DNA from: Piromyces finnis finn | Lineage: Eukaryota > Fungi > Neocallimastigomycota | DNA: 64,000 nucleotides | Reading direction: 5' to 3' | Assembly: GCA_002104945.1 (NCBI GenBank) | Contig: MCFH01000024.1 | Span: 372,001 to 436,000, forward strand | Part shown: piece after piece, positions 28,294 to 48,159 of the stretch | Position numbering within the stretch: the first letter of the stretch is position 1 | Layout: every line of letters starts with the position of its first letter | Translations under genes and position numbers: made by a program | The notes under the pieces: model-generated | Database searches by the model: none | Told to the model about the DNA's origin: nothing | The model's input: only the letters and a program-made list of their open reading frames with translations

Positions 28294-30808
28294 TTATACT
28301 TGAGAATATTCTCTAATTAAAATTTCATAATATTTTTTCATTTTTGTTAATGTATATAATTTTTGTGAAGTTTTAACAAGTTCTTTATCACAAATTTCAC
28401 AATAATCCATCATTTCATTAATAATATCTTCTTTATTATCATAGAATTCTTCTAATTTTTTACTACTAATTTCTTTGATAGTATTTGTTTCTGTGGTGGT
28501 TTGAAGATTGGAATGACTTCCTTTGTGTGACTTATCATCACTATCTAAACTACTTAAACTTTCAACTTCATCTTTATCTTTTAAAATGTGAACTTCTTCT
28601 TCGTTATCACTAATATCTTCTATGGTTGTTTCCTCATTTTTAATATTATTTTTAATCATATAAAGAATTTCTGGGAGACCTTCATGGTCATCAGTACTAG
28701 ATCTTTTTGGTGTGGTGTAAAGGTTATCAATATCTTCGTCTCTCTTTGGTCTGAAAGTAGTTGGACTTGAAAAGAATGATGATTCTCTTCTTTTTCTAAA
28801 CATTCTTTTTTGTCGTTTTTTGTATCTTTTATTACTTTCTTCGATTGCATTTTTAATTGTTTCATCACGATTAGCTTTGGAATAATCATCAGCAAATGTA
28901 GCATATAAAATGGCATTTGGAATGATGTATAAGAACATAGAAAACTAACATTATTAAATAAATTGATGATGATAATGATAATGATTTATTAAAAATAAAA
29001 TAAATATTAATATTGATTTTGTAAATATTTTTTATTTTTTTTTTTTTTTTGCTAATTTTTTGATATTTACCATAATAGCAAAAAATGCAATAAACTTTCC
29101 TTGAACCTTTTTATAATTTTTAATATTTTTATTAAGAAATATAAAAACATATATATTATATATATTGAATGTTTTATTATTTAAGTTTATTATTTTATTT
29201 TTATAGGTTTATTAAATTTAATGTACTTACAGTAAATGGGAAATAGTCACCATAACCAATACAAACCATAGTAACGGCAGCCCACCAAGAAGATTCAACA
29301 ATCGAGTGACTGTATTTTATTAATTATAATATTATTATTCAGTAATTATATTATCTTTAGGTATTATCATTTATTTTATTAAAATTAATATTTACACTGA
29401 TGCTGGTTCTGCTTGTGTTTCATTTCCAACTTTTGTATAATTTCTAATCCATTTCTTTTTAATGTATAATAATATATATTTATTAATATATTAATTAGTA
29501 TAACAAGTATTAGCTATAAAAAAAATTTTTTTTTTTTTTTTAAATAATTATATGTATATAGCTTGATACCTTTTCATTTGGATCATATTTTGAACCAAAA
29601 ATTTCGGCATGATAGTAAATTGGTGAAATTGCAAGAACACCCAAATAAAAAATGGTATATACGTTGAATAAAAATTTACTATTATCTTTTAAACAATTTA
29701 CAACTATATTAAAATGTTTGGCAAATCCATTTTTCATATGAATGATTCTCATAAATAAACGTATAATTAGAAATTCACTTAATATTGTTGGTATCCAATA
29801 CAATACTTTATTTCCTCTAAAACGAGTTTCGGGGAAAATAAGTTCAATATAAAATGCTGATATACCTAATAAATTTATTGTTCCATTCCACTTGAAATAT
29901 CCTTTATAACGAGCAATAAATTTGTATATTTTCCAATCATGATAAAATCTTTTCTTTTTTTCCTTTTTCTCATTGTACGAAGAGTAAAATAAATAATCGT
30001 CTGATTCTTTTCCATTTTTGTCCTTCTTTCTCTTCTCTTTTTCCATTTCTCTTTCTCTTTTCTTTTTTTGTTTATATTCTTGTTGATGAGAATAACAAAT
30101 TAGATTGTAAATCCATTCTACTGTTAAAAATCCATTAAGAATAAAAAGTAATATATGCCAATTTCTTTCTTGAATTTTGGTATGATTCCAAATCAATTCA
30201 GAATATAAAAGATTTGCAATAATTAAAAATACAAGATCAAAGGTAATAAGATAATTCATAAAAGTAGCAATAGATGAATCTTCAGGATTTTTTGCAATCT
30301 TTAGAAATTGTGTTTTTAATAAGTGAATAAATGAATAATTTTCATTATCAAGATCATTGTAAAAATCATTTTCATTTGGGCCCATGTTTAAACCATTCAT
30401 ACTCATACCTATGCCACCCATACCATTAACTCCCAACATACGACTTCCATTCATATTATATGAACTGCCAGGAAGATATAATTTACTCGCACCTAATCTG
30501 GAAGGATTATTTAAATTTAGACTTCCACTACTATTATATAGATTATCATTAGATTTCAATAAATTAAATTTATTTCTATACGGCTTTCCATCTTTTAAAT
30601 TTAAAGTAGAATTACTTGCATAAGTTGGTGATTTCAAATTAGTTGTAGTGGGTGTGTTTAAATCATTTACATTTTGAAAAATTAATTCTTGATTAAATGT
30701 TCCTGTATATATAGGAATATTAGGTAAATCTTGGAAATTAGGTAAATGAGGTTGATGAGAAGCCAATGGCTTTTTATTATCGTTTAAATTATCTTTATTT
30801 CCTTTCAT
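28294..30808 (-). CDS. 6TM K+-channel-like subunit 1 (filter TMVCIGYGD), 5 exons (30808-29570, 29454-29396, 29309-29231, 29106-29071, 28944-28294)
   Basis: S1-S5 helices lie in ORF 29540-30808. The pore exon reads 'HSIVESSWWAAVTMVCIGYGDYFPFT', S6 reads 'VQGKFIAFFAIM|FSMFLYIIPNAIL', and there is a C-terminal helical tail. Confidence 0.88.
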
Positions 30809-31018
30809 TATTTATAATTAACATATATTAAATAAAATATTATTTTTTTTTTTATCTTTATTTAAATACACTATTAATACTTTATTTTAAATTTGTTTGT
30901 ATTTCTATTGTATTTTAATTTTATTTTATATTCTACAAAATTGTTACTGGCATTAAGAATTTTATTAATGAAAATGTATATATGTATAAATTAATAAATT
31001 GATTATTAAAGGTATATT

Positions 31019-31061
<43 letters not shown>

Positions 31062-32566
31062 GGGTATGTTTTATACGAAATTATTCTTGCTTTTTGTTTA
31101 TCGAAATAAAGTGTGTGAATTTATTTTTTATATAAACATTTTATACTGAATTTGAATTGAAATTCATATACTTTACAATAATGCGCTATTAAAGTTTTTT
31201 ATGTACACATATATATTTTATAAATATAAATAAATATTAATATGAATTTTGAATAAAGGAATACTCAATTGTTGTTATTATTTTTTTTTAATTTAAAAAT
31301 TATACATTAATTATTTTTTCTAATTTTTTTTTATTTTTATTTTTTTTTTAAAGAAAAGGCTTTTCCCATATAAATTTGATTTTAATTAAAGTGTTGGTTA
31401 GGTAAAATATATTAAAAAATTAATTTTTTTTTTCATTAAATTTAATTATTAAGAAAAAGATTATTGAGCTATTAAATGTAAAGATATTGTTATAAATGAA
31501 TTTTCAAATAATAAAACCGGGTTATATATATATATATTTATTATTAAGTACTAATACTTTTACAATATAAAAAGCAACAATATTTATAATTACTATTCAA
31601 ATAATAACAATAATAATAAAAATACTATTAATAATAATAAAAGTAAGAGGTCCAAAATTATTTTTTCAATGTTTTTTGATAATAGTGTATAAAATGTTTA
31701 AAAAAACACTATTATATATATACATTAAAATTTAACATTTATATATAGTAACATCAAAACTAGCTTTTTTTTTTTTTTTTTTATAATCTGGTAGATGGTA
31801 GATAAAATAAAAAAGAAAAACGGCGGTAAATTTTAATTATTTCAATTTTAATTTTTATAGAAATTTTTGTATATTAAAAGCGCTACTAACAATCATATTT
31901 AAATAAAATATGTTAATACTAATTAATTGTTATTGTTTTAATCCTACAAAGTTAAGTTTTAAAGAAGAAACGTAACAAAAATGTTATTATTATTGTATTT
32001 TTTTTTTGTATTTTTTTTGAAAAAAAAATACTATTATTATTATTTTAATATTTAAAAATAAAAAAATTAATAAAGAATTAACTTTTAAATGGGTGAGCTT
32101 TTTTGCTTTTTATATTAGTAAGTAATTTTATTTATATTTAATAAAAAATGAACTTTAAACTTTAATAATATATATCTTTATAAATCAAGGTAAATATAAC
32201 TTTTTATTAGATATAAAATGTAAAGTAAAAATTTTTAATAACATATACCATAAAAAATGTCATAAAATAGTAGTAATAAAATATCAATGTAGATGTTTTG
32301 TTAAAATAACCGATTTTTTTTATTAAAAAAATTCTAATATTGAATTATCAATTTATTATTTATTATTAAGTTTCTATACCTGTATTTTTAACGTTTAACA
32401 AATATTAAATAATTATACAATATTAATAACACTATCTCTTATTTATGTGATAATAAATCAAGAATTTAATATTGTATATATAAATATTTTATTAACAATT
32501 TCGAAGATACGTAAGAAACAAACAAACAAAAAGAAAAATCATAATTATAAAATAGAGGCAATAAAA

Positions 32567-34965
32567 ATGATGAAATCAACCAAGAAAGAAACGGTTGATA
32601 CAATAAAGCAAACAATCAATGTTTTAACAGTATTACTATATAATAGTCGACTATGTTCAAATAATTGTTTTCTTAATTTGATAAATTTTATGAATTTTTT
32701 TGTGACTTTGATAGCAATTTACATATTTTTCATATCTTCTATACCGGCTTATCGAGGAAAAAATTTAGAAAAACTTAATATATTCGAGTATTTAATAACA
32801 ACGTATTATATTGTGGAAATTCTTATACGATATATTTTATATACTTTTTTCGATGTGACAACATTTGGTCGAATTGATGAATTCTATTTAGAAAAAGAAT
32901 CTATATTAGATTTGAGTGAAAGGCAATATCGTGTGATAACCGTTGGAAATGATAATAATAGTAAAAAGAATATGAAAGATAGAAAAAAAAAAAAGAAAAA
33001 TTTTTTACATTTAATTAGATTTTTTGTGAATAAAATGGAAATAATATGTTTATTAAGTATGCCTAATCATTAATAATAAATTAATTATTTTGTTATTCCT
33101 TTTAGAAAAATATATATTAATTTTTTTTTTTTTAATATATATATTTCAAAGATATAATGCCATTATTTGTTAGAATGATTATAAATAAAAACTTGTTGGA
33201 AATATATAATGATTCTAAATTAAGCTCACTTATTTCTATTTTTCAATATACACGATTAATCCGTTTTTCTATTTATATTATTAATACAAGACTATCAAAA
33301 ATTTTTAAATTTGATATGTTAATAAAGGTATTTAAAAATTCAAAGGAAGGACTTATATCAACATTTTTATTGTCAATATGGACTATTGTATTTTTTTCAA
33401 ATTTCTTTTATTTTGCAGAAACATATGACTGTCATTTTGATGAACAAACAGAAGTAAGAAAACAACATTTTAATATAAAAAATTTAAGATAAAAAAAAAA
33501 AAATTATTAATTCATATATTTTGTAATAATGGATAATATTAATATTTATTTCTATAAATATATTTAATTTTTTTTTTTTTTTCAATATTACAAATATAAT
33601 ACTGAAACATTATAGACATATTATAGATTTAATAAATCTAATGAAAGAGAAGAATGCAAAGTGTAAGTGATAAAAAATTAAATATAAATGCAAATTGAAT
33701 AAGGATTAAAAAAAAAGAAAAAAAATTTTTTTATAACAATTTTTAAAAATTAATAATAATTATTTTTATAAAAAAAAAAAAAAAGACAATCAATAATAGA
33801 TGCTTATTGGTGGGCAGTTGTTACTATTCAATGTATAGGTTATGGTGATTTAACACCATCCACTACAATGGGGAAAATTATTAATGGATGTATTGTTTTA
33901 ATTGCTAATGTAATTTTTTCAATTCCTAGTGCTATTTTAACAATTGAATTTTTGGATTTGATAATAAAAACAAAGAAAGATGAAGTGATAGAAAAAGCAG
34001 TTATAAAATGTGAATCAAAAATAGAAAAAGCAAGAAAGAAGAATTTTCAAAAGGAATTAATGAATATTATATCTCAAGAAAATATTCAAAATAATGCAAA
34101 TACATTTATTAAATATTATTCCATTAATGAAACTCTTTATGATAGTGGTGGTATTTTTAATATAAACAATAGAAATAATGATGGACCAGCAAATGTAATT
34201 GATTTATTTAAACTTAAAAAAAGCAATAATTCAATTGGACATCTAATAGAAAGAAGAAAAAGTACCAATTCAACTGGTGGTTATTTGTTAGAAAGAAGAG
34301 GTAGTAAAGGAAATAATTTAATGAATTATCATCCACCGTTGAATAGAATTTATGGAAGTAAGGAATCAATTCATAATTCAAAACCAGGATTAAATTATGA
34401 ATTATACAATAAACCTACAAAAGGTAATACACTTACAGAATATATTGGTCCAATAAAAATAGGCTCATTAAATGAAAGGAATACAGTTACAAACAGTAAA
34501 ATATTGAAAACTAGTGAGTTAGAATTAGATGATCCTACAACAACAATTAAGTATGGGTTAGGTGATAAATTACTATCAAAACAAAATAATAATCCCGATT
34601 TACTCAAGCTTAACAGAATTATAAAGAATCAACAATATTTAAATAGATTAACAACTCAAGCGAATAATTATTCAGGGATTTCTCACATGAGGGGAAACAA
34701 TAGTTCTTATTACTTAACAGGATCTTCTGAAAAGAACCGTAAAAATGAAAAGGGAGAGATTGCTATTGAATTTAAGTTGGGTGAAGTAAAATATATGTCA
34801 GCTAGAGAAATAAGTAAGGAACTATATAAACTCTCTATGGAATACTATGCACAATGTGATGATGAATTTTCTGAGGTTGATGAACAATCTGGTACATTAT
34901 ATTTATTAATGAAAGGTTTTGAAAAAACTCTTCGTTGTATTCGAAAGATTAAAGGAACAAAGTAA
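32567..34965 (+). CDS. 6TM K+-channel-like subunit 2 (filter TIQCIGYGD), 4 exons (32567-33056, 33152-33453, 33616-33662, 33786-34965)
   Basis: The AAAAATG start at 32567 is preferred over the GTG-initiated ORF at 32447. S4 is 'QYTRLIRF'. The pore and S6 read 'QSIIDAYWWAVVTIQCIGYGDLTPSTTMGKIINGCIVLIANVIFSIPSAIL'. Confidence 0.9.
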
Positions 34966-35384
34966 AGTTAATAATCAACAAATTGAAGTATAAAGTTTTT
35001 TAAGTACTTTTAATCTCTATCCAATAATTTATACTTTTTTTTTTTAAATCATTTTTTTTATAACAAAAATAGTTTATTATTCACAATTTTTAAGTATAAA
35101 TATTACCAAAGTATTGATTACATTTTTACACAAGTAAGCAAATGTATATTTTTTTTTTAAAATAAAATAGTTAGTTATTATAATTCTATTATTTAATATA
35201 ATTGTAAATAAAATATTAGAAAAATATAATATTAATTAATAGTTGAATGTAATGTATATCTTAAACATAATAATACTATTATTATATTCTATCGTTTAAT
35301 CATTACCTTAACAACACAATATTTTAAATATAATGTAATATAATATTATTTTTTATATAAAATATTTATTATATTAAAATTTCA

Positions 35385-35589
35385 AATATAACATTAAATA
35401 AACAATCTAAAATAATAAATTATTTTAAATATAACATTATAAGCAATCTAAAATAATAAATTATTTTAAATATAACATTATAAGCAATCTAAAATAATAA
35501 ATTATTTTAAATATAACATTATAAGCAATCTAAAATAATAAATTATTTTAAATATAACATTATAAGCAATCTAAAATAGTAAATTATTT
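35385..35589. repeat. 41-bp minisatellite, ~5 copies
   Basis: Unit AATATAACATTATAAGCAATCTAAAATAATAAATTATTTTA. GCAATCT recurs at 35443, 35484, 35525 and 35566. The first and last copies are slightly degenerate. Confidence 0.92.
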
Positions 35590-37116
35590 CATATTTCATC
35601 ACTCTCTTCATACATTTATTTTGTATAACAAGACGGTAGATGTAATGTCTACTTTTTCTATTACAATTTTTTTTATTTATAGCTTCAACATTTGTACAAC
35701 TTTATACCAATATTTTTAAAATTATTGGTGGACATATAAAGTTCAGCTATCTTTTTTTTTTTTTTTTTTTTTTTTACAGAAATCAAGTCATCATTAAATC
35801 AACTTTTTATTTTCAAATAATGATATCTCTAATTTTAATTTCATTAATTCTATAAGTATTACTATGTTTAATTGATTTTTCTTTATTTTAATATTTCTCA
35901 TTACATTGTGATATGTTTTTTTTTTTTTTTTTTATAATTATGAGTTGGTTGTTACTTTAACTGCTTACTTGCTTACAGACGTTGTTGTATTTAATATATA
36001 TATAATTTAATTATCAACAATTTTTTAATTATTATTAATTAATTTCATTAATAAAAAACTTTAAATATTAGTATAATCAAATTTTATTTTTTTAACCAAT
36101 TAAAGTAATAGATTGTAATATATAATATATATTATAATATAATATTTTCTATTTAATTAGTATATAATTTTGTATTAACCATATATTAGTTATTTTATTT
36201 AAAAGTAATCAATTTAAATTTAATTAAAATTGATAGAGTAATGTAATTGTAATATATTTCATTTAAATTATGCAGAAATTTTATTTACCATCCAAAGTTT
36301 TCTGCGAATGGATAAATAAATGTATAAATAAATTAACATTTAAATAAATGATTTAATAAAATTAAATAAACAAATATATAAAAATAGATAAATAGTGTGA
36401 AAAGTTTTTTTTTTTTTTAATTATTATTAAATAAGATTTAATTGCACAAGTAAAAAAAAAAAAGGCATAAAAAATTAGAAAAATTATTGAATAAAAAAAA
36501 AAAGTTCTTTTACTGCTAAAAAAAAAAAAAAAAAATAAAAAGAAAGAAAGGAATTAAAATAAAGTAATAATCAAGCAAATAAGAAAGCAGCAAGAAAACA
36601 AGCAAGCAATAAATAAAAAAACAAACAAATACAAAGATATTTATAGAAAAGAAATTAAATTTTACAATTAATAAATTATAACATTAATCAGATAATTATT
36701 AATTTATTGTAGGTAACCCATTTTTTTTATATCGTTAAAATTGAATAGTTACATTGTGCTATTTTTTTTTTAATGATACTTTATTAAACGATTTTATGTA
36801 TTTTATTATTTAATATTATTATATAATTGAAACAATATATAACCATCATTATCATTATTTATTTTTAAGGATAAAGGTCTAACTAAAATATCTTTATTAT
36901 ATCTTTATTCATAATTATACATAGTCTATATATAAAATCTTAAACATCATTCTTTAAAATACATAAGTCAAAATATTTTAAATAATTTAAAAGAAGCAAA
37001 TGAAAATATATTAAATATTATTATTTTAAAGTAAAAGAAAAAAGAATTTTTAAAAAACAAAAAACAAAAAAATAAAATAAAAAACTTTTATATATGAAAA
37101 ATATATCCTAAAGAAT

Positions 37117-39261
37117 ATGCCAGGAACAAATCAACCCTCAGGTTTTGTGGATAAAGCAATACACAAATTGTATAATGACAAACTGTGTTCACAGAATAAA
37201 ATTTTAAATATAATAAATTATTTCAATTTTTTCTTTGTCATAGCTACTATATATATACTATATGTTTCTTCTTTACCACAATATCAAATTGAAGAAGACG
37301 ATAAAAGACTTTTCGAAATACTTGAAATCATAATCACTTCATATTTTGGCATAGAACTCTTAATAAGATATATTTTATATACTTTTTTCAGCGTTACTAT
37401 CAATGACCGTGAAAAAGAATTTGATAAATATTTTCATAGAAATGTAAAAAATGACATTGATTATCATTTCATTACTATGAGTGGTGGAACAGGAAAAGGT
37501 GTCAGTCGATCAAAAAGACAACGTGAAATACTTACTTCCTCATTTGTTCATTATATCAAATTTTTTAAGAGCAAAATTGAAATTAATAATTTAATTAGTA
37601 AATATATTGATTATTTATTTAAATTATCATTTTTTATTATTTAGATATATTTTATTAATTAGCATTCATACTATATATGTATGTATATTTAATATCATAG
37701 GTATAATACCATATTTTGTTGATAAATTATTCCCACAATTACTTCTAATTAATAATTCATATATTAATTGGATTCCAACAGCATTAAGATATACCCGTAT
37801 TATTCGTTTTATGTATTATTTTGGTAATACACGCTTTTTTACATTTATAAAAATGCCATCCCTTTTAAAAGTTTTAAAGAATTCAGGTGATGGTTTTATT
37901 ACTGTGACGGTATTAGTATTATGGTCGATGATGTTTTTCAGTAGTTTCTTTTTTTATGCAGAAACCCATGATTGTGAATTTGATCCAAAAACTGAGGTAT
38001 TTTTATTTTTATTTATTTTTTTTTTTTAAAAAGAATAACTAAAATAATATAATAAAAAAAAAATAAATAAAAGAAGATATATGGATAAATTTTTTTTAAA
38101 TATTAATATAAAAAATATTTTAATTAAATATACCATTTTTCTTATTAATGTTTATATCTATTAAATGAAATATTAGCAATTTTATAGACAAACCAAAGAT
38201 GGTCCTAAAAAGTGTCTCGTGTAAGTAGTATTATTATTAAAGAATTTAATTATATGTTATTTTATTACAATAACAAAAATTATTCATGAAACATATTAAT
38301 GGAATAAAACCATTTTTTTATAATATTAATATTTAGAAATTCTATTATCGATTCGTATTGGTGGGGTTTGGTAACTGTTACATGTCTTGGTTATGGTGAT
38401 ACAACACCAGTAACAGCACCAGGTAAAGTCGTAAATGGCATTACTATTATTTTTGCAATTATGATCTTCCCAATTCCAAGTTCTATATTAACTATTGAAT
38501 TTATGGAATTCCTGGTTCAACTTAAAAAGAATGAAACTATTGAAAATGCAGTAAAGGAATGCGAAAAGAAAATTGAAAAAGCTAGAAAAAAAAGAGTTAA
38601 AAAAGAATTGAAAGATATTATATCTACAAGAGCCTTTTCTAATAGTACAAATACTTTCTTAAAATATTATTCAATTCATACATCTGCTGGTAATCCTTCA
38701 GGGTTAACATATTTGGCAAACACCAGAAATGATCCAGTAAACATTACTAATTTATTTAAAAATGATAATGATGTAATAAAAGAAGTTAATGAAAATGGAA
38801 CATCAAGTAACGATTTACTTTACGATTCAACCACAACCATTAAATATTCATTGTCAAAACAACTATTAAAAAATAAGGATCCTGAAATTGAAGAATTAAA
38901 AAGTATTATTCAAGACCAGAAAAATTTACATAAAGCTACAGTAAGTTTTAACAAAATTCCAAAATCAAGTAAGGATAATGAAATAAATCCTGCCTATTTA
39001 TCAACGGAATTTGTCCATAATCGTAAGAATAGTCAAGGGAAAATCGAAGTTGATATGAATATGGGTGAAATTAAAAATATGACTGTGGGTGAAATTAGTA
39101 AAGAACTTTATAAATTATCAATGGAATATTATGCCTTTTGTGATAATGAAATTAGTGAAGTTGATGAACAAACCGGTACTTTATATTTATTAATGAATGG
39201 TTTAGATAAAACAATTAATCTAGTAAATGCTTTAAGCCATAAAAGAAAATCTATTCAATAA
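37117..39261 (+). CDS. 6TM K+-channel-like subunit 3 (filter TVTCLGYGD), 4 exons (37117-37597, 37701-37996, 38177-38220, 38337-39261)
   Basis: S4 is 'LRYTRIIRF'. The pore and S6 read 'NSIIDSYWWGLVTVTCLGYGDTTPVTAPGKVVNG...FPIPSSIL'. It has the same intron positions as subunit 2 and a closely similar C-terminus. Confidence 0.9.
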
Positions 39262-40206: not shown

Positions 40207-42918
<2,712 letters not shown>

Positions 42919-45182: not shown

Positions 45183-48159
45183 ATGTCAGATAAAGAAATA
45201 AATGAAAATTCTGAATCAAATCAAGTAAAAAATAAGGAATTTAAGATACCAAAAATAGAACTTACCACAACATCATTTGATAATTATACATTAAATAAAG
45301 AGGGAACTATCAAAAAGCAAAGTGATATAACTCAATTAGAAAATTTATTTATAGACCCAAAACTTGAATCTACAAATAAAGAGGATTTTAATCATTTAAG
45401 AACAAAGAGAAACTCAATTCTTCGTATACCTGAAAAGTCAAATAATGTAACAAAAAGTTTAGATTACTTATCAATTAATACTCATACTAACCATTTACAA
45501 AATCATGCCACTTCTCCATTAAAATCATCAAATGATAATCATTTAACTCCATTAAAAAATGGATTTAGTAAAAGTCAACCAAATATGTTAAGAGAAGAAG
45601 AGGAAACTGTAAATCTTCAAAAACATATATCAAAAATGTTCAACCATGCATTTACTGATGCTATATATAGTCCTAGAGATTCTTGGCTTGCATCAGTTTT
45701 TAATATTTATCATGCCATTATTTTATACGTTTCAGTGTTTTTAGAATGTTATTCAACTCAACTTATGGTACAAGAAACAAAATCAGAAAGAACAGCATGG
45801 AGAGTTGTTTCATTAATTTTCACTATTCAGTTATGTATTTATTTCATAGCTGCTGTTATTTTATATCCTATTCGCAAGAGACGTCATTTAGCTATTATCG
45901 AAGCGGCTACCTCCACAAAAAATCAAAATGAAAACGGGGAAACTATTACTTATAAGAACGTTAATGTAACAAAAAATCCAATCGAACTTTACAAAGGTTT
46001 TATTGATTTTCCACATATAATGGAATTCTTAGGATGCCTTCCATTTTTTGTAGAAGAAATATTCCCAAAATGTCGTCTCATTAATGTAAATCATTATGGG
46101 TTAATTTCATTCCTTTTGCTTTGTTGTCGTCTTTACACTAGTTTAAGTATATTCTATTACTTGAGAAATCGCATTTCCAAATTTTTCCATATTATTATAA
46201 GGGCTACTAAGGAATCACTCTATGAAATCATATCTGTTATTGTTATATATTTTATTGTGATGATCTTTTGTTCAAGAATTATTTTTTATGCCGATTTATC
46301 AAAATGTACTCTTGATGAAGCTTCACAAGTTAGTAAAAAATATATATTTTTTTATTTTAAATATAGAATGATTTTTATAAATATTTTGTATTCTAACCTG
46401 TACAATGAATATTTATCTTAAAATAGAACTGGAAACGTCAAAATGAAGATGGCACAGTTAATATGGAGGAATCCTGTGAATTGTAAGGAATTTATTTTAT
46501 AATTATAAATTGATTTTTTTTTATTATAATGTAATTTGATTAAATTTATATATGTTTATTTTTTTTTTAATTTATTTATATATAAGACAATCAAATCTTG
46601 ACGCTTTTTGGTATACATTTATGACAATGACAACATTAGGTTTTGGTGATCAAGTAGTTAATACAGTGAGTATTATTATAATCATCATCATCATTATTAT
46701 CAATTTTATTATCATCATAAACTTTTTATTATTTATTATATATATAAAAAATATTAATGATTCATTTAAATTGTAAATTATAAAATTAATTTATAGTATT
46801 TTGGCAAGATTATGGCAACACTTGCATTTGGGGTAAATATTATTATAGAATTGTTAATATTAATAAAAATTTATCATCAATATTTTATTTTGTTAATACT
46901 AATGGTATATTAAATTTAAATAGGCAACACCAATTTTGTATACTTTACCATCTATTGTAATTACTACAAAAATGATTACATTAATTATACATGATACTAA
47001 AAGTGCTGCCACCAAAGATGTTGCTAAAAAACATAAAAGAAAATTTTTCAATATGACTCAATTTCTTTCAGGTAATAATAATAGAAAAAACAAATTATCT
47101 AAGTTAAAGAAAGGCAAAAATAATAATGATGATGATATGAAAATAGCAAATATTGATAATGAAAATGAATCCAAGTTAAAGAGTAAAAATAAGAAAAAGG
47201 ATAATTATTCGGAAAAAATTCACATCCATAATAAAAATAATGGAAAAGAAAAACAAGGAAGATACATTGTTCCATTGCATGATAAAAGTTCTGGAAATGA
47301 TAGAGAAGATATAAAGAAATCTACTTTAACAGTTCCACACGTTAAAAAAGAGGAAGCCTCGATAGCTTCATCCATAGCACCACTTATAAATGGAAATCCA
47401 ATTACTTCATTTGATACCAAAGATAGTAAAGATTTTAGTTTCTCAAATAGTAATCCTAGTAGTGAAAGTCATCCTAATAGTAATATAGATGAAAATGAAA
47501 CACCAAAAGAGAATATTAAAGAAGATATTGAAGCATCTTTAACAGAAGAATCAGATCAACCAAATATGTGTGAAAGTCCTAAAACTATAGAAGAGGAACC
47601 ATCTCTTGTTCATAAATCCTCAAAGGAATTTGGTCCTTCAGAGCTAAATCAATCAATAATAAATCAAAAAGGTGACTTGTTTTCTTCTGCTAATTTAACA
47701 TCATCCATGACCATTAAAAAATTTTATCAAGATAATCCTTTATCAGTTGGTAAACCATTAGCTTCAATTTTTGAAAACCCGGAATCCGATCGAATTAATA
47801 ATGATGAAGACAAAGATATCCATCCACCTGTATCTTCATCAGCCACAGCATCAAATTCTAATATTAATAATTCTAATTTAAGTGTTACAAAATCCAAGGG
47901 AAAAGGAATATTTAAATCTCTACCTGCCCTAAATTCAACCGGTAGTGGTAGCAATAGTGAAACCGAAAATGAATCTACCATATTTGATTATAATGCCTAT
48001 AAGAAAAACGCTAATAATAAGAATTATATTGTTGGTATGTTAAAACAACATTATCAAACTTGTCTTGATGAAATTGATTATGTTAGAAAACGTGAAAAAA
48101 CATTAAATTCATTGAAAAGTGGGTTTGAAAAAGGTATTATGGCACTTCAAACCATGTAA
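45183..48159 (+). CDS. 6TM K+-channel-like subunit 5 (filter TMTTLGFGD), 5 exons (45183-46328, 46427-46482, 46587-46665, 46797-46832, 46924-48159)
   Basis: The pore exon reads 'QSNLDAFWYTFMTMTTLGFGDQVVNT' and S6 reads 'YFGKIMATLAFG|ATPILYTLPSIVI'. S4 is nearly uncharged ('LLCCRLYTSL'). Both cytoplasmic tails are long and low-complexity. Confidence 0.88.

Follow-up and report, generated by a model that had tools for sequence, protein, structure and literature searches.

The stretch of DNA considered here, a window of 64,000 nucleotides from the anaerobic gut fungus Piromyces finnis (contig MCFH01000024.1, positions 372,001 to 436,000 of the forward strand; G+C content about 19%), carries five tandem, intron-bearing genes for six-transmembrane (6TM) Kv-like channels: G1 (-), G2 (+), G3 (+), G4 (-) and G5 (+). 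In three of the five (G1-G3) the first residue of the T-x-G-Y/F-G signature of the selectivity filter is Cys, with GYGD present, whereas the other two (G4 and G5) keep the canonical Thr and show the signature itself. The HCN-type string CIGYG occurs in G1 and G2, and G3 reads CLGYG (ACIGYG in some orthologs). The original prediction had described HCN-like Cys filters in three paralogs. The Cys is indeed present in three diverged paralogs, but the cluster comprises five genes and two of them have Thr.

Exon models were built from six-frame translations and GT..AG sites and gave proteins of 687, 672, 581, 681 and 850 amino acids (aa) for G1 to G5, with no internal stops. G1 (28294..30808, minus strand) consists of five exons (30808-29570, 29454-29396, 29309-29231, 29106-29071 and 28944-28294) and has the filter VTMVCIGYGD. 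Translation of 29275-29240 (-) gives VTMVCIGYGDYF, placing the core CIGYGD at 29263-29246 (-), with the Cys codon TGT at 29263-29261. G2 (32567..34965, plus strand) has four exons (32567-33056, 33152-33453, 33616-33662 and 33786-34965) and the filter VTIQCIGYGD; its core CIGYGD lies at 33832..33849, its Cys codon TGT at 33832-33834, and 33832-33855 translates to CIGYGDLT. G3 (37117..39261, plus strand) has four coding exons (37117-37597, 37701-37996, 38177-38220 and 38337-39261) and the filter VTVTCLGYGD, with the core CLGYGD at 38383..38400, the Cys codon TGT at 38383-38385, and 38383-38406 translating to CLGYGDTT. Of the Thr-keeping paralogs, G4 (40207..42918, minus strand; exons 42918-42157, 41949-41888, 41795-41717, 41518-41483 and 41313-40207) reads IALSTIGYGD, with the core TIGYGD at 41749-41732 (-), and G5 (45183..48159, plus strand; exons 45183-46328, 46427-46482, 46587-46665, 46797-46832 and 46924-48159) reads MTMTTLGFGD, with TLGFGD at 46633-46650 (+). 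Translation thus bore out the predicted positions of the three Cys motifs, that of G1 being on the minus strand; the 18-base ranges originally reported correspond to the six-residue cores, and the 8-mers quoted with them start two codons upstream. The motifs are not chance matches. Each lies within the P-loop encoded by a spliced 6TM channel gene (Pfam Ion_trans / Ion_trans_2), and in alignments with PDB sequences the Cys falls on the second Thr of TTVGYG, the Thr of ion site 4.

The G3 model is identical to the NCBI entry 'voltage-gated potassium channel [Piromyces finnis]' (P0012), and the G5 model is identical to the database protein P0170. G1 is spliced at the same junctions as the NCBI protein P0023 of P. 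finnis, and the N-terminus of the G1 model agrees with the full-length ortholog P0018. The public G1 protein P0023 (433 aa) begins within the S2-S3 loop and is truncated N-terminally relative to P0018 (699 aa); the start used here, at 30808 (687 aa including S1-S2), is backed by orthologs (P0018) and by the open frame at 29570-30808 (-). The G2 model is backed by the orthologs P0001-P0007. There was no exact match to G2 among length-compatible database proteins, and the public model of this gene may be absent or may differ from the one given here. Two introns in the P-loop/S6 region are common to G1, G4 and G5, and both are missing in G2 and G3. Within G4, intron 1 (42156-41950, -) contains a long AAT repeat that would read as in-frame poly-Asn if unspliced, and intron 3 (41716-41519, -) contains a TTTA microsatellite that recurs just downstream of the gene. 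Bacterial open reading frames were ruled out, as the genes are spliced, and pseudogenes were ruled out by the intact, conserved and transcribed frames.

Comparison with P. finnis RNA covered G2 and G3. Spliced RNA contigs from four runs in three studies reproduced the G3 joints 37597|37701 and 38220|38337 exactly and confirmed the last G2 intron, with 33662 joined to ~33786-33798 and contigs extending to 35106. Both plus-strand Cys codons (G2 and G3) are covered by RNA with no differing letters. For G1, G4 and G5, transcription is indicated by intron-free ortholog contigs: full-length orthologs are found on contigs too short to hold introns, e.g. 699 aa on 2281 bases. The expressed genes include G2 and G3 and, judging from these ortholog contigs, G1. 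The RNA contigs also place the start of the G3 transcript near 36568 and reveal an intron of 216 bases (GT..AG, 36708-36925, +) in its 5' untranslated region, upstream of the start codon. At position 33960 (+) run X2 has A for G, a synonymous TTG-to-TTA change of a Leu codon in G2 that presumably reflects strain variation.

Orthologs were located by word-index searches, with single exons or database proteins as queries, in Piromyces sp. E2, Neocallimastix californiae, Anaeromyces robustus, Orpinomyces and rumen metatranscriptomes. Every filter-spanning ortholog of G1, G2 and G3 found in this way has the Cys, the filters reading VCIGYGD in G1, QCIGYGD in G2 (one QCTGYGD, P0006) and TCLGYGD or ACIGYGD in G3. 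N. californiae and A. robustus have the genes in the same order, ZPR1-G1-G2-G3-G4, with the same C, C, C, T pattern of filters, and the G4 filter is unchanged in these two species and in P0048. Conservation of the Cys across orthologs had been proposed as a check of the original prediction and Thr-bearing orthologs as a refutation; all orthologs found keep Cys, and since the RNA contigs of three studies carry it as well, both a sequencing error and a strain-specific change are excluded. The Cys codon is TGT in 9 of 9 cases, the choice of TGT over TGC being uninformative in such AT-rich genomes, and the adjacent codons differ synonymously. Synonymous differences next to invariant filter residues indicate that the whole filter, Cys included, is under purifying selection, and on this comparison of sequences the Cys is a real, selected natural variant. 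A word-index search with the G1 pore region of P0018 returned seven candidates, all of them G1 orthologs, a blank that says little about other Cys-filter families.

Outside the cluster the substitution is rare. A profile spanning S1 to the post-S6 region of the family alignment was compared with 1.84 billion cluster representatives (50% identity), giving 15,803 matches at E <= 0.001 and just 30 at <= 1e-30. The filters of the best 150 of the 15,803 matches were surveyed, and the term 'rare' refers to the nearest 146 clusters and a published table: Cys at the Thr position was found in 0 of the 146 nearest representatives outside G1-G3 (about 230 pore motifs). The nearest matches beyond the family are channels with several pores (Diphylleia and Rigifila) or with one pore (Lithocolla and Ambispora, the last a glomeromycete among distant protists). 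Since even the nearest of these are so distant, the family seems to be limited to Neocallimastigomycota, and anaerobic gut fungi appear to be its only carriers in the databases searched. Two outgroup matches, the unrelated proteins P0029 and P0166, read T-T-C-GYG; their Cys occupies the second filter position, as does that of C. elegans UNC-58.

In a maximum-likelihood tree comprising 17 members of the family and 24 outgroup sequences, the family is monophyletic (support 100/98) and G2 and G3 are sister groups (99/97), while the joins of G1 with G2 and G3 (68/82) and of G4 with G5 (69/82) are weakly supported. The best tree requires one change between Cys and Thr, on the stem of G1+(G2,G3), and intron structure is consistent with it. 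Approximately unbiased (AU) tests rejected neither a grouping of G1 with G4 and G5 (p 0.37) nor G1 branching first (p 0.10). The root was placed on distant, long-branch sequences, with no close outgroup, and the G4-G5 join may be long-branch attraction. Based on the cluster survey and the tree, the Cys is the derived state within a Thr-bearing family, and its similarity to the Cys of HCN channels is convergent, in line with the original prediction; it probably goes back to a single Thr-to-Cys change. The stems between paralog groups measure 0.9-2.0 substitutions per site, compared with 0.03-0.26 inside the groups, so the duplications are much older than the sampled genera and the Cys has been held throughout. 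It had also been argued that retention in three paralogs points to selection. Purifying selection on the filter is evident, but one ancestral change followed by conservation is simpler than three independent retentions.

The channels have their affinity with Kv rather than HCN proteins. Ion_trans (PF00520) and Ion_trans_2 (PF07885) were the only Pfam domains matched on full-length orthologs, on P0012 and on the exons. In the same Pfam comparisons, no cNMP_binding match, i.e. no cyclic nucleotide-binding domain (CNBD), was found on any C-terminal exon or ortholog, no T1/BTB match on N-terminal exons or in ortholog domain annotations, and no HCN domain among the matches. The best PDB sequence matches are Kv2.1, Kv1.3, Kv1.2, Kv3.1, KCNQ1, Shaker and Kv4.2, and HCN chains are absent from the best 60 PDB sequence matches as well as from the best 50 Foldseek matches. 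An AlphaFold2 monomer model of G3 has a mean predicted local distance difference test (pLDDT) score of 70.6, with 80-93 in the transmembrane core, its helices fit a voltage-sensor-like S1-S4 with an S5-P-S6 pore after it, and its best 50 Foldseek matches are all Kv or KCNQ channels (Kv4.2, KCNQ1, Kv2.1, Kv3.1, Kv1.x and Shaker), with modest TM-scores of 0.3-0.6. The Trp-Trp pair of the pore helix and the Tyr and Asp of the filter are kept (WW...C[IL]GYGD) in G1-G3 and all orthologs, and the G2 pore helix reads WWAVVT, as in Shaker. The S4 segment of HCN channels is long, its basic residues (about seven or more) being broken up by Ser/Thr (PMC7576140). Alignment of S4 in the gut-fungus family shows three to four basic residues, three Arg being in register in G2 and G3 and fewer in G1, and thus no long S4 of the HCN type. 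By sequence and modelled fold, G1-G5 are Kv-like channels of the Shaker superfamily, and the prediction of a Kv-type protein lacking a CNBD holds.

Other parts of these proteins are conserved as well. In the post-S6 region of G3 (38470-38700) about 75 residues are nearly identical between genera. The last ~60 codons of all five genes encode a common helical motif (ISKELYKLSMEYYA.CD.E...VDEQ.GTLYLLM in G2/G3) that has no Pfam match and may act in assembly or in binding a partner. Two Cys residues around the turret mini-exon (YDC...ECxV) are present in G2-G5 and their orthologs, for example at 33425-33662 in G2 and 37970-38220 in G3, and the G1 turret has GSK...PASV without this pair. An extracellular disulfide is possible at the turret of G2-G5, where AlphaFold2 predicts a small beta-sheet. 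The G5 lineage also departs from the GYG rule, with GFG in P. finnis and GLG in the metatranscriptome protein P0072, followed by QVV and not xxP.

Taken together, these observations suggest how the filter could have changed and what the change could do. In G1-G3 the Thr of TxGYG, which contributes its hydroxyl to the innermost ion site (site 4), has been swapped for Cys, from ACN (ACT/ACA) to TGT, a path of two nucleotide changes that necessarily runs via Ser. The change most likely occurred once, before G1 split from the ancestor of G2 and G3, with purifying selection since. As the remaining pore scaffold is canonical (Trp-Trp, the Tyr of GYG, and Asp), a four-site Kv filter is likely to be preserved, with thiol for hydroxyl in the bottom ring. 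By analogy with KcsA T75C and with site-4 mutants of Shaker and Kv1.5, occupancy of site 4 (and site 2) would be weaker and unitary conductance lower or altered; handling of Rb+- and NH4+-like ions would be changed, with K+ still preferred over Na+. In KcsA, T75C lowers the occupancy of ion sites 4 and 2, so that the weakening of site 4 stated in the original prediction agrees with published data, and in T75X mutants K+ conductance falls 3-17-fold. K+ selectivity persists in Shaker T442A and Kv1.5 T480A, and Shaker T441S and T442S/G have higher Rb+ and NH4+ conductance. The explanation as a whole, namely Kv-type, K+-preferring channels with a conserved Cys of single origin, a weakened site 4 and altered conductance, is the one we favour as reasonably probable, with its conduction part resting on analogy.

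Several points weigh against this explanation. The weak G1 node (68/82) and the AU tests leave room for two origins of the Cys, and the AlphaFold2 model, a monomer of moderate confidence (pLDDT 70.6), is uninformative on the geometry of a tetrameric filter. All that is proposed for conduction and selectivity of G1-G3 is drawn from other channels, and the Na+/K+ selectivity of the KcsA T75X mutants was never measured. Replacement of the site-4 Thr by Ala makes MthK (T59A) and NaK2K (T63A) non-selective, so a loss of selectivity is conceivable. Finally, the position just before the Cys, where TTVGYG has its first T, likewise departs from the canonical residue (V, Q, T/A), which may change the filter further.

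Alternatively, the Cys could be a nearly neutral replacement: tolerable at site 4 in place of Thr or Ser, fixed once by drift and conserved since because any change in the filter is deleterious, with the cytosol of an obligate anaerobe, permanently reducing, perhaps making it harmless. The tree is compatible with a single origin, the path from Thr to Cys leads through Ser, a residue natural at this site, the entire filter is invariant and not Cys alone, and the host is an anaerobic gut fungus (PMC5168858). However, T75C does change conductance and ion distribution in KcsA, and the Cys has survived stems of 0.9-2.0 substitutions per site. Moreover, neither the 146 related clusters nor any CNBD-less channel in the published survey has it, which argues that it is usually selected against; neutrality seems unlikely.

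Another possibility is functional convergence with HCN, in which the Cys filter would make G1-G3 weakly K+-selective, Na+-permeable and depolarising. CIGYG is the motif that HCN channels use, all eight CIGYG entries of a survey of 302 channels are HCN-type channels with a CNBD, and a simulated KcsA T75A loses selectivity as do the MthK and NaK2K mutants. Yet HCN4 C479T is less K+-selective than the wild type, and TIGYG does not turn HCN into a K+ channel; the Cys is therefore not the cause of the weak selectivity of HCN, which instead accompanies a rotated Tyr and a filter of another shape, a geometry associated with a different pore helix. In G1-G3 the Shaker-type pore helix, the Tyr and the Asp are intact, a CNBD and a long S4 are lacking, the best sequence and fold matches are Kv channels, and the site-4 mutants of Shaker and Kv1.5 stay K+-selective. 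Convergence of this kind is distinctly unlikely, and 'HCN-like', as an inference about function, was not supported: the likeness is limited to a five-residue string and is convergent.

The thiol-lined site 4 might also be an adaptation of obligately anaerobic gut fungi, either a pore retuned to rumen cations such as NH4+ or an oxygen-, sulfide- or metal-sensitive switch that is affordable only in a permanently reducing cell. The NH4+ version leans on the gain of NH4+ and Rb+ conductance in Shaker site-4 mutants, and we regard the idea as quite improbable. If it were true, the neighbouring Cys genes (G1-G3) and Thr genes (G4-G5) would offer a matched set, provided by nature, for probing the contribution of site 4 to conduction and selectivity in K+ channels. 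A chemical sensor as such, in which a ring of four thiols at the cavity end is attacked by soft metals, sulfide or oxidants and the channels are shut or modified on exposure to oxygen or metals, is very improbable, for although the site-4 side chains of four subunits would, from geometry, converge on the pore axis and the host is a strict anaerobe, HCN channels of aerobic animals carry the same Cys ring and the HCN papers examined give it no redox role.

Few residues in biology are as strongly conserved as the Thr of TxGYG. Its role at site 4 is central to the debate between direct and soft knock-on, and the evidence so far comes from engineered mutants. The genes themselves already bore the annotation of voltage-gated K+ channels, and a membrane-proteome paper goes no further than listing channels of this kind from gut fungi (PMC5168858); our literature search found no paper on the filter of these gut-fungus channels. 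New is a natural, conserved and expressed site-4 Cys in an otherwise Shaker-like pore, with Thr-bearing sister genes adjacent. Its main value is that of a ready-made test of whether Cys alone shifts selectivity in a Kv scaffold, which in HCN it does not. The analysis also documents a K+-channel family that is apparently restricted to Neocallimastigomycota, a group in which ion transport is essentially unstudied.

Compared with Kv channels of the Shaker superfamily (Kv1-Kv4, KCNQ), the gut-fungus proteins are alike in 6TM layout, in the R-x-x-R-x-x-R pattern of S4 (G2/G3), in GYGD and in a conserved Pro of S6. They differ in the Cys that replaces the second Thr of TTVGYG in G1-G3 and, as a family, in lacking a T1 domain and in having a long insert between S2 and S3, a turret on a separate mini-exon and a family-specific C-terminal domain, and their identity to solved Kv chains is just ~15-21%. 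With HCN channels, G1 and G2 have the CIGYG string in common, whereas G1-G3 have no CNBD, C-linker or HCN domain, have a short and weakly charged S4 and keep the Trp-Trp pore helix, and their Cys arose independently, inside a Thr-bearing family. KcsA T75C has the identical substitution, at the same position of a filter that is canonical in all other respects; that channel is a laboratory mutant of a two-transmembrane bacterial protein, in contrast to the natural, fixed and conserved change in G1-G3. The fungal Kv-like channels of Pozdnyakov et al. 2020 (PMC7576140) likewise lack a CNBD, but the filters of the fungal entries (Rhizophagus, Mortierella, Saitoella and Cryptococcus) all start with Thr, unlike those of G1-G3. 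These authors note that Ser or Cys occasionally replaces the filter Thr; in their Table S2 of 302 channels, CIGYG entries have a CNBD in 8 of 8 cases and no CNBD-less Kv-like channel has Cys, in a sample drawn from outside Neocallimastigomycota (PMC7576140). Finally, UNC-58 (TCGYG), a K2P channel of C. elegans, also has a natural filter Cys, in its case shown to matter for ion selectivity, and the authors of that study report that they found none in filters of K+ channels belonging to other classes. The Cys of UNC-58, however, occupies the second filter position in a K2P scaffold, while that of G1-G3 occupies the first position in a Kv scaffold.

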